Source: Podarcis tiliguerta (lineage: Eukaryota). Taken from it: a stretch of 64,000 bases of DNA. The position numbers and the translations under genes were made by a program. The notes under the pieces are model-generated. The model made no database searches, was not told where the DNA came from, and worked only from the letters and a program-made list of their open reading frames with translations. The stretch lies in NCBI GenBank assembly GCA_965153285.1, contig OZ229116.1; one strand, 5' to 3'. Shown one piece after another: positions 12,167 through 48,365 of this stretch (positions are counted from its first letter, which is position 1; every line of letters begins with the position of its first letter).

Positions 12167-12315
12167 CAGGAGCAGCTGCAACAACAGCACCAACAGAAGC
12201 AGCAGGCGTTGGACCCACGGTTTTCAATCCCTGGCTGTGGCTGTACAGAGCTCGGTGTCTCCTGGGTCACAGATGCTTGCCTTTTGCGCATCTCCATCCG
12301 CTCGGATCCCATGGG
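12167..12315 (-). CDS. RGS20: RGS20 cysteine-string exon, PMGSERMEMRKRQ...GSNACCFCWCCCCSCS(C)
   Basis: tttttcctcatgcag|CCCATGGGA...TCCTG|gtatgc; 149 bp, phase 0 to phase 2. RZ-family cysteine string with the MGSERMEMRKRQ start typical of RGS20. Adjacent to ATP6V1H as in human. Confidence 0.96.
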
Positions 12316-12748
12316 CTGCATGAGGAAAAAACAGGAAGGTTAGGCTCTGTGGAAAAAGCCCAGGCATCAGGTTTACTGCTTCACTCATAGTCTTGGCACC
12401 CAGTAGCTTTCCTAATTGTTGCTAATAGGTGAAGTGGCCTGTGGAGCAGTCAGAAGAAACTGCTTCCTTAATTCATGGTCCTAATCAGATGAGGAATTCT
12501 GGGCCAGTAATGTCTTTAAACCCACCGTGACTGTTTGTCATTGATTTTTAATTTGCCAAGTGTTTTACGGTCTTCGTTTCCTCCACAGAACAATGCAGCA
12601 AAGTTTTTGAAAGAGCAGGGGAAGTAGGAAAGATTCCCAGGGCCCCACTCAGCAAAATGAGCAGGAGGGACCCCCACACCACCCCAAGAGCAACAGGGCT
12701 CTACTCCGCCCTGTTGCAGATGCAGGTAATACACATCACTATCTAAAT

Positions 12749-13364
12749 TGGGGTCAGCAAACTGTCCCTCAGACCTTGTGGGGGGCCGGACAATACCCTG
12801 CAAGCTAGTCCCATAGCTGCCTCTGGACCTGGAGAAGGAATGCACTTGGCACGCACTCAGGAGCGTGTCTTGAACCACCCGCCCACCGGCGTTGTTGATG
12901 AGCAGCAGCCGCTCCATCGGCCTGTCCCCATGGAGCTCCCAGGTGGTGTGAACCACATGCTGCAGCCCATCATACGAGGCCAGGTTGGTGGGCAGGCTGC
13001 GAATGAGGAGCACCGGGCAGGCTGCCACAGCTCGCCCTCCAGCTGTTCCAGTGTGGCCGCTGAGTGCGCCACCAGCAGCAGCGCTGAGCTGGGCACCAGG
13101 CATGGGGCAAGCAGGCGTGCCAAGGTGTGGCTGAAGCCCCACGATGCGCCCATCACAATGCCCATGGTGCGGCCCAGACCACAGGCCCACCTGCCAGCCT
13201 CTCGGTCCATGGCCTAGCCGAGTTTACCTCAGCGTGTGGGCAGCAAGGCTTCGGATTGGCTGCAGGGACTTCTTTTCAAGGAAACGCAGTGCCACGCCAG
13301 TTTAGCTCAGCAGGGGACTGCCCAAGCAGGCAGCAGGGTCCATGGGCAAGTCTGCCGACCCCCG
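12749..13364. mobile_element. hAT-type TIR element carrying captured host DNA (Pack-TIR)
   Basis: Left end TGGGGTCAGCAAACT and right end AGTCTGCCGACCCCCG are imperfect inverted repeats of Charlie type. Flanked by ATCTAAAT (12741-12748) and ATTGAAAT (13365-13372), a 6/8 match. Confidence 0.75.
12887..13210 (-). pseudogene. SPR: Captured sepiapterin reductase exon 1 copy (frameshifted, CpG-decayed)
   Basis: GLGRTMGIVMGASWGFSHTLARLLAPCLVPSSALLLVAHSAATLEQLEGEL, then in another frame LPTNLASYDGLQHVV...MERLLLINNAG. Aligns with recalled human SPR [51 protein letters not shown]...LQRLLLINNAG. Homology stops at NNAG/G|GT, the SPR exon 1 boundary. Confidence 0.9.
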
Positions 13365-13579
13365 ATTGAAATGTTGACCATTTAAGTCTAAAATGACCTC
13401 ATTGCAACACTGCCCAGGGTGCCTTTCTCAGGGGGCTCAGACACCTTTCTGAATGTCTTCATCCTGCCTCCCCTGCCCCAAAAGTTGAGCTGGGAAACAG
13501 AGAAAAGGTCACAGCGAGAATGCTTCTTGTTTTAGAGAGCTTGAGGCAGAAGCAACAACAGGTGCCTCCTCATCTCAGG

Positions 13580-28993: not shown

Positions 28994-29125
28994 CAGGGCT
29001 TCACAAACTTTCCCTCACCATGGTCCACTTGAAAACTGCTGAGGATATAAGTAACAGTACACAGACCACATGAATGAAGCTCACAGACAACTGGTGGTCC
29101 ACGGACCACAGCTTGGGAGCCCCTG
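28994..29125. mobile_element. hAT (Charlie-like) MITE
   Basis: CAGGG...CCCTG termini with perfect 8-bp TSD CTATAAGA (28986-28993 and 29126-29133). Confidence 0.88.
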
Positions 29126-40549: not shown

Positions 40550-41250
40550 CAGGAAGAGATTCCATCGGCTTTGGCCGCAGACATTCCTGGGCTGGGATAG
40601 CTTGACCATAGCAGTCCAGGCCTTGGTAACTTCATGACTGGAATGCTGCCATGCACTCTCTGTGGGCCTCCCCTTGTGGCTGGTGCAGAAGCTGCAGTTA
40701 GTGCACAATGCTGCAGCATGATTGGTGACAGCATATTAAAACTTCTGCTCAAAGACCTGCATCAGCTGCTGATCTGCTACAAGGTACTCTGATGAGCATA
40801 TAGATCCTGATCAGCTTGGGCCCAGTATACTTGGGGAATCATCTTACCCAGGCTTCCTCAACCTTGGCCCTCCAGTTGCTTTTGGCCTACAACTCCCATG
40901 ATCCCTAGCTAGCAGGACCAGTGATCAGGGATGATGGGAATTGTAGTCCCAAAAACATATGGAGGGCTGAGGTTGAGGAAGCCTGATCTTACCCCTATTT
41001 GACTGCTTTCATCTGCAGAGCTAGCAATTTGGTATCTGTGAGGAGTTCATCTTTAGTGTAGCAGCACATGTGCTCTGGCCTTCCTGGTCTATGAACACTG
41101 AGCAGGAATTGCTCTTCTATTGTTTTAGACCCAGCAAAAATGTTTTTATTTCAGCCAACTTGTTCAAACTTGTAATTTAGTTATGTAGACTTGTGTTTTT
41201 TTACCTTTTGCTGATTGTATTTGTTTATTGTTGATAATTTGTATATTACT
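40550..41250 (+). mobile_element. Degenerate L2 fragment hosting a hAT MITE
   Basis: gcagaagctgcagttagtgcacaatgctgcagc (QKLQLVHNAAA) is an L2 RT C-terminal motif. Boundaries approximate. Confidence 0.6.
40849..40985. mobile_element. Palindromic hAT MITE (137 bp)
   Basis: CAGGCTTCCTCAACCT/AGGTTGAGGAAGCCTG perfect 16-bp TIR; perfect 8-bp TSD ATCTTACC. Confidence 0.93.
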
Positions 41251-47134: not shown

Positions 47135-48365
47135 GGAGTTTGCGGATATAATCTCAGAGCCATTGTCTATAACCTTTGAGAATTCTTTGAGAACAGGTGA
47201 GGTCCCTGCAGATTGGAGACAGGTAAATGTTGTCCCATCTTCCAAAAGGGGGAAAAGAAAACCCAAGTAACTACCAACCAGTTAGCTTGATGTCAATACA
47301 GTGGTACCTCGGATTAAGAACTTAATTCATTCTGGAGGTCCGTTCTTAACCTGAAACTGTTCTTAACTTGAAGCACCACTTTAGCTAATGGGGCCTCTTG
47401 CTGCCGCCACACGATTTCTGTTCTCATCCTGAAGCAAAGTTCTTAACCCGAGGTACTATTTCTGGGTTAGCGGAGTCTGTAACCTGAAGCATATGTAACC
47501 TGAAGCGTCTGTAACCCGAGGTACCACTGTACCAGGAAAGGTCCTAGAACAGATCTGTATATGAGCACTCTGAAAAGAATGCTGTGATTACTACAACTCA
47601 GCATGGGTTTCTCAAAAACAAGTCATGCTAGACGAATCTCATTTCTTTTTTGATAGAATTACAAGCTTGGTGAATCAGGGAATGCTGGGGATGTAGTGTA
47701 TCTTTTTAACAAAGTCCCCCGTGATCTTCTTGCAGAGAAGCTGGTAAAATGTAGTCTGAACAATGTAACTGTTGGGTGGATTTTTAGCTGCTTGACTGAC
47801 CAAAACCCAAAGAGTACTCCACTGATGGAGAAAAAAGTGACAAGTGAGATGCTTGCTATTGTTCAACGTCTTTATAAATGACTTGGAAGAAGGAATTGAG
47901 GGGGTGCTCATCAAATTTGCAGATGATACCAAAATGGGAGGAGGAGCTCCCATTTCTGTCTGCCGCAGAAGGCAGAATTGGGATTCCAAATGACCTTAAC
48001 AGATTGGAGAACAAGACCCAAACTAACAAAATGAATATCACTAGGGGAAAATGTCAGGTTTTAAGCCGCTGCACAAATATAAGATGGGGGACCCCTGGCT
48101 TGTCAGTAGGCGGCGTGAAAAGGATCTAGGGGTCTTAATAGACCACAAGATGAACACGAGTCAACAGTGTGATGCAGCAACAGCAAAGTAAGCTAATGTT
48201 CTTCTAGGCTGCATCAACAGAAGAAACAGTAAGAGATCAAGGGAAGTAACAGTACCACTCTTCTGCCTTGGTCAGACCACACCTGGAATGCTGTGTCCAG
48301 CTCTGGGCACCACAATTTAAGAAGGATATGGACAAGCTGGAACTTGTGCAGATGATCAAAGTTCT
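47135..48365 (+). mobile_element. CR1 LINE RT fragment (degenerate), interrupted by a MITE
   Basis: Recognisable CR1 RT remnants (ADIISEPLSI...[41 protein letters not shown]) with frameshifts. Confidence 0.88.
47299..47529. mobile_element. Tc1/mariner MITE nested in CR1 (same family as 10132-10389)
   Basis: TA-CAGTGGTACCTCGG...CCGAGGTACCACTG-TA; body nearly identical to 10132-10389. Confidence 0.92.

Follow-up and report, generated by a model that had tools for sequence, protein, structure and literature searches.

A dispersed hAT-like element carrying unspliced sepiapterin reductase exon 1 sequence in an RGS20 intron of a wall lizard

The 64-kb stretch of Podarcis tiliguerta DNA analysed here (hereafter the window) contains, in an intron of RGS20, a decayed hAT-type element of 616 bases (12749-13364) whose interior carries sequence from the sepiapterin reductase gene (SPR) and still keeps an exon-intron boundary. 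Its ends are hAT-like, and it is one of several copies of a family that share a common stem. We consider it quite likely that it is an old, immobile, non-autonomous Charlie-type hAT copy, filled with an unspliced genomic piece of lacertid SPR. A first-pass annotation of the same DNA had proposed a hAT element with a captured SPR exon 1, a proposal supported by the cargo, the unspliced structure and the Charlie-type ends; its GC-rich insert of about 615 bp measures 616 bases, with a GC content of 0.64 as against 0.48-0.50 in the flanking DNA. No transposase was found in the 616-base element, and self-comparison of the element and its flanks within the 64-kb window revealed neither a second copy nor a paralogous empty site.

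Read on the minus strand, the interior opens with 138 bases lying 5' of an ATG (13211-13348), which we interpret from sequence reading only as presumed SPR 5' UTR and proximal promoter, and which include a CCAAT motif about 45 bases 5' of the ATG. A decayed copy of SPR coding exon 1 follows (12887-13210), which begins at the start codon of the native gene and stops with the NNA(G) of the exon end, delimited with SPR structures and with residues 1-108 of P. muralis SPR. The last part of the interior (12779-12886) starts with GT, is common to family copies, and is interpreted as the beginning of SPR intron 1.

The identity of the exon was established from solved structures and from the native protein, both of which bear out the SPR assignment made on first reading. 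Compared with solved structures, 13001-13210 (minus strand) matched sepiapterin reductase chains only (E 1.4e-7, query 9-62 corresponding to chain 4-57), while 12885-13010 (minus strand) matched residues 67-104 of the same SPR chains, with LLLINNAG at the end (E 0.05). The two pieces are colinear but stand in different frames, since a G run at about 13025-13026 has lost one G, a deletion located by the frame change between two tblastn pieces and by codon reading on the minus strand. Native Podarcis muralis SPR (P0037) aligns from Met1 to residue 108 over 13210-12888, with 66% identity across residues 1-66; its N-terminus MDGEAG appears as MDREAG in the copy, and its ...ELRAACPAL... as ELW-AACPVL once the frameshift is corrected. 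The cargo is from a lacertid SPR rather than from just any SDR. The ATG at 13210, previously noted for its good Kozak context (ggccATGG), coincides with the native SPR Met1. The whole of exon 1 to LLLINNAG is indeed present, as had been claimed, but it is not uninterrupted coding sequence, the 1-base deletion near 13025 having been overlooked. Pfam returned no domain in any translated piece, the pieces being too short and too decayed.

The cofactor motif TGASRGFG of the native enzyme has become MGASWGFS, a change that had been described as consistent with CpG transitions. The motif is present as described, and 25 of the 38 residue differences from native SPR fit single CpG-type transitions (as counted in the first alignment, with the frameshift uncorrected). 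In the exon part, the observed/expected ratio is 0.45 for CpG and 1.96 for TG+CA. Since only exon 1 of a protein of about 265 residues is present, the glycine motif TGxxxGxG is altered and one frameshift breaks the frame, the copy encodes no enzyme, and the earlier description of it as dead in this respect holds.

The structure at the end of the exon supports a DNA-level copy rather than a retrocopy. SPR protein homology extends up to ...AAC AAC GCC G, the exon ends as G|GT at 12887/12886, and GT comes next (12886-12885). Native SPR continues after exon 1 with SLGDVSK (exon 2), to which nothing similar occurs in the 64 kb, and neither exon 2 nor exon 3 was detected anywhere in it. The continuation that is present instead, which is not exon 2, is common to the window copy and three other family copies: residues 106-144 of P0021 match 12870-12772 (64% identity, E 1e-9) and residues 94-108 of P0015 match 12870-12826, both as intron-derived tails, and the shared tail extends to 12772, inside the left arm. 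Because this continuation is common to other copies, the unspliced structure is a property of the family. Read-through genomic ORFs from many other vertebrates all diverge at the same boundary, at G-E (GT GAG). These observations agree with two suggestions of the first-pass annotation, namely that non-SPR sequence starting with GT follows the exon and that this argues for genomic capture and not for retrocopying. That the stretch is a processed retrocopy, or the native or a duplicated SPR gene itself, has next to no chance of being correct; such a reading draws on the SPR similarity and nothing more, whereas exons 2 and 3 are absent from the 64 kb, the post-exon GT sequence recurs in other copies, there is no poly(A) and the frame is interrupted. 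The missing exons, the GT after the exon and the shared tail thus rule out a retrocopy, the native gene and a full duplicate alike.

Whether the element is one of several copies had been left as a question, which can now be answered positively. When the first piece was used as query in a full HMMER scan covering 1.84 billion representative proteins, it recovered five short wall lizard gene models that are copies of this family, two of them from P. muralis and three from P. lilfordi. The three P. lilfordi models are placed on separate chromosome-sized records (119.7, 136.9 and 71.8 Mb), and the five models from the two species occupy at least three chromosomes. All five share with the window copy the GASWGFS-type changes, ASDD for ATDD and the W in ..WEL; shared derived states include GFG to GFS as well as the non-CpG change PLE to PME. 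The other family copies are known here as proteins only. A maximum-likelihood tree was inferred from exon-1 peptides, the window pieces being joined with an X at the frameshift for alignment and tree. In this tree all six copies from lacertids fall into a single clade (98/99) on a stem of 0.18, sister to native P. muralis SPR (96/90). This topology fits one capture in the lacertid lineage, after which a master copy other than the native gene would have given rise to the dispersed ones.

At the ends of the element lies the longest inverted pair of the region, joining 12750-12778 with 13334-13362, with a local alignment score equalled by 0.2% of random pairs in the window. The left hAT terminal inverted repeat (TIR; 12749-12778, plus strand) has its core at 12748/12749-12763 and shows weaker complementarity up to 12778; the right TIR core (13349-13364), recognised from the inverted pair and from pattern matches, reads CGGGGGTCGGCAGACT on the minus strand. 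Each end (12748-12763 and 13349-13364) agrees at 12 of 16 positions with the TIR CAGGGGTCCYCAAACT that Table 1 of Novick et al. 2011 gives for the Anolis Charlie-type hAT-HT2 and hAT-N4 (PMC3014272), in line with the imperfect Charlie-type TIRs reported on first reading. The left end, 12748-12763, has 2 mismatches to CAGGGGTCNNCAAACT. At up to 2 mismatches, CAGGGGTCNNCAAACT has four matches in the 64-kb window as against 0.48 expected, and two of the four are exactly the element ends, in inverted orientation (the left on the plus strand and the right on the minus strand). Between the two arms the differences are A/G transitions, of which one affects a CpG, and we infer CAGGGGTCGGCAAACT as the original TIR. 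Short Charlie-type TIRs (CAGGGGTC..CAAACT) are thus found inverted at both ends, as in hAT elements, although their CAG tips are mutated, both tips being degenerate with TTG and CGG in place of CAG.

Putative 8-bp target site duplications (TSDs) abut these termini, though imperfectly. The left copy, ATCTAAAT (12741-12748), and the right copy, ATTGAAAT (13365-13372), agree at 6 of 8 positions, as had been noted before (p 0.006 at fixed offset), an agreement that requires a 1-base offset, with the left TIR one base shorter than the right. Published target patterns for hAT-HT2/hAT-N4 are NTCTAGAN, NYYTARRN or NTNTANAN (PMC3014272). The left 8-mer fits NYYTARRN / NTNTANAN fully (p 0.005) and the right one with one mismatch, so that the palindromic target preference of this hAT family (NTCTAGAN / NYYTARRN) is seen in the left 8-mer. 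A Helitron was also considered and is ruled out by the TIRs and the 8-bp duplication, and by the lack of 5'-TC or CTRR-3' ends.

The window contains other hAT-related sequences. One hAT MITE of 132 bases (28994-29125) has TIRs CAGGGCTTCACAAACT and CAGGGGCTCCCAAGCT and a perfect 8-bp TSD, CTATAAGA; another, of 137 bases (40849-40985), has identical TIRs, CAGGCTTCCTCAACCT, and a perfect 8-bp TSD, ATCTTACC, and resembles the 135-base hAT-N1_AC type of Anolis. The perfect TSDs of these two MITEs, which served as internal controls, indicate that hAT elements have been active in this genome. A solitary Charlie-type TIR match, CAGGGGTCCCCCATCT, occurs at 48082-48097 (minus strand).

The course of events that we favour, in which both the capture mechanism and mobilisation by a hAT transposase are inferred, would be as follows. 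An internally deleted hAT element may have taken up a piece of SPR once, in the lacertid lineage, via gap repair or template switching, two capture models discussed in PMC8277862. This piece would have replaced the interior beyond some 16-30 bases at each end, and would have consisted of the entire coding exon 1 together with 5' flank and UTR (about 125-140 bases) on one side and intron 1 (about 100 bases) on the other. A hAT transposase acting in trans would then have moved the chimeric element to several chromosomes, in which case the other copies presumably carry the same ends, and one copy would have inserted in sense orientation into the RGS20 intron, duplicating a ATCTAAAT-like target. 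All copies, methylated and under no selection, would since have been eroded by CpG transitions and small indels. Counted against the hAT reading are the roughly 16-30 hAT-like bases per end, which are short for a mobilisable element, the loss of CAG from both tips, and a TSD that agrees at only 6 of 8 positions with its 1-base offset; nor was an autonomous partner seen.

Part of this evidence could also be accommodated by gap filling at the present site, whereby a resident hAT element in the RGS20 intron was broken and repaired from an ectopic SPR template, so that the window copy is the founder or a separate capture and not a transposed copy. Most animal Pack-TIRs are reported to arise in this way (PMC8277862) and only short hAT ends are left here, yet the window copy is nested in the Podarcis copy clade, and the derived changes that it shares with that clade exclude a separate capture, although it may be the family founder. 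On balance we give gap filling at this site a slight chance. The imperfect TSD and the degenerate TIR tips would likewise suit a small duplication, ectopic or segmental, in which the 5' end of SPR was copied without any transposon, the inverted ends and the 8-mers being there by chance. Such a plain duplication has a slim chance of explaining the data: two matches to the published TIR fall exactly at the ends and are inverted, where 0.48 are expected in 64 kb, the left 8-mer fits the hAT target pattern, and at least five further short copies lie on different chromosomes. A very slim chance is left for the native SPR locus as the master, with an exon 1 flanked by transposase-recognisable ends that seeded copies in each lineage. 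Independent lineage-specific copies in Lacertidae, Rhineura and Phrynocephalus (see below) do call for a locus-specific cause, but the lacertid copies share an enzyme-breaking derived stem that is absent from native SPR, which points to a non-native master. A single capture by a hAT element, with later transposition of the chimera, is thus the reading that we retain.

The same protein scan also found exon-1-only SPR models in Rhineura floridana and Phrynocephalus forsythii. The two Rhineura floridana models (XP_061468803 and XP_061482088) are on chromosomes other than that of native SPR. In the latter (P0016), which carries the NCBI model name 'proto-oncogene Mas-like', 55 residues of a decayed SPR exon-1 copy are spliced onto a receptor body, so that the annotated model is a chimera that starts from a dispersed SPR first exon. 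Five models were found in Phrynocephalus forsythii (P0003, P0013, P0017, P0046 and P0050; the copies include KAJ7319857, KAJ7320350 and KAJ7341911), on at least four records, one copy being on the chromosome of native SPR; P0046 and P0050 have the same intron 1 read-through, NNAGER..TGRRE. In the exon-1 peptide tree, the Rhineura and Phrynocephalus sets each group with their own species' SPR. A single ancient capture for all three lineages is rejected by the AU test (p 0.00095 for one clade of all copies), as is one clade of lacertid and Rhineura copies (p 0.022). Own-species grouping and these rejections together indicate that SPR exon 1 was copied and dispersed independently at least three times.

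Taken jointly, these data allow the tentative suggestion, which we put forward with more doubt than confidence, that the SPR 5' end is a recurrent capture target in squamates with a locus-specific propensity, that separate families arose from the respective SPR genes of lacertids, of Rhineura (a worm lizard) and of Phrynocephalus (an agamid), and that the element described here belongs to a wider hAT wave. The propensity might come, for example, from ends that a transposase can recognise, from a hAT element inserted at the native locus, or from a germline-open CpG island serving as a repeated repair template. This lizard's element may in that case be part of a wider wave in which hAT elements distribute CpG-island promoters, along with first exons, among other genes. 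Such a wave, if real, would supply alternative first exons, examples being the Rhineura SPR-Mas-like model and the in-phase SPR-RGS20 arrangement described below. The three independent squamate families in any case pose a testable question, namely why SPR has been copied repeatedly.

In plants, the capture of gene fragments by cut-and-paste transposons is one of the main ways in which new exons and chimeric genes arise; in vertebrates it is thinly documented. The Pack-MULEs of rice and other plants are TIR elements that take up and amplify pieces of genes, copied at the DNA level together with their introns, and they favour GC-rich 5' ends. They differ from the present element in belonging to the Mutator superfamily, with 9-11 bp TSDs, long TIRs and plant hosts. 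The Helitrons of vesper bats disperse a promoter, first exon and splice donor together and can seed chimeric transcripts; unlike the element studied here, with its TIRs and 8-bp duplication, they have neither TIRs nor TSD and insert between A and T.

The 616-base element can be classed as a Pack-TIR, one that is notable for being multi-copy, for its complete first coding exon with donor, and for a parent gene of relevance to colour morphs. Its interior is homologous to a host gene whose parental locus lies elsewhere (the window is in RGS20 and holds no other SPR exon), the capture took place at the DNA level (G|GT followed by shared sequence that is not exon 2), and a transposase is absent. 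An animal survey by Tan et al. 2021 listed 370 Pack-TIRs in 100 genomes, 208 of them hAT, of which four among the 370 were multi-copy; none was found in the sole squamate, anoCar2, and 4 of 5 multi-copy Pack-TIRs had GC-rich cargo (PMC8277862). Closest in kind is Pack-hAT-N8_XT of the western clawed frog, likewise a non-autonomous hAT element with the 5' end of a gene captured at the DNA level inside it, GC-rich cargo and several copies on different chromosomes (PMC8277862). The surveyed Pack-TIRs (PMC8277862) differ from the element reported here, which holds the whole of a coding first exon, start codon and splice donor included, and which has at least six diverged copies across lacertids. 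As regards the ends, the closest counterparts are hAT-HT2_AC and the 'orphan' hAT-N4_AC of Anolis carolinensis, which likewise have a 16-base TIR, CAGGGGTC..CAAACT, and an 8-bp TSD fitting NYYTARRN / NTCTAGAN (PMC3014272). TIR positions 9-10 are GG (or AG) in our lacertid element, however, in place of CC/CY in hAT-HT2_AC and hAT-N4_AC. Non-autonomous families of Anolis share only the TIR with the autonomous element, and incorporation of extraneous DNA was reported by Novick et al. 2011, with no host exon named (PMC3014272).

The parent gene adds to the interest of the family. SPR is on Chr9 in P. muralis, and its upstream region controls orange coloration in wall lizards (PMC6431182). Because the orange colour morph is controlled from that region, anyone who maps reads, designs PCR or studies regulation at the SPR locus has to reckon with dispersed look-alikes of its 5' end. 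With its promoter-proximal region, start codon and splice donor, a multi-copy family of this kind is also a ready-made alternative first exon for other genes.

The position of the window copy illustrates this last point. The element is in sense orientation, 433 bases upstream of the host RGS20 coding exon (12167-12315, minus strand), which encodes MGSERMEM... with the cysteine string, has a TG|GT donor, and starts as cag|CCC ATG GGA, a phase-0 acceptor. Owing to the 1-base deletion, the frame of the ATG at 13210 meets the SPR donor (12887|12886) in phase 0 as well, and with a phase-0 donor and a phase-0 acceptor a spliced transcript would read through into RGS20. In the predicted product, RGS20 would be preceded in frame by about 108 residues, partly junk and partly SPR-like. 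The window copy has a weakened donor, GTGGGC, as against GTGAG in other copies.
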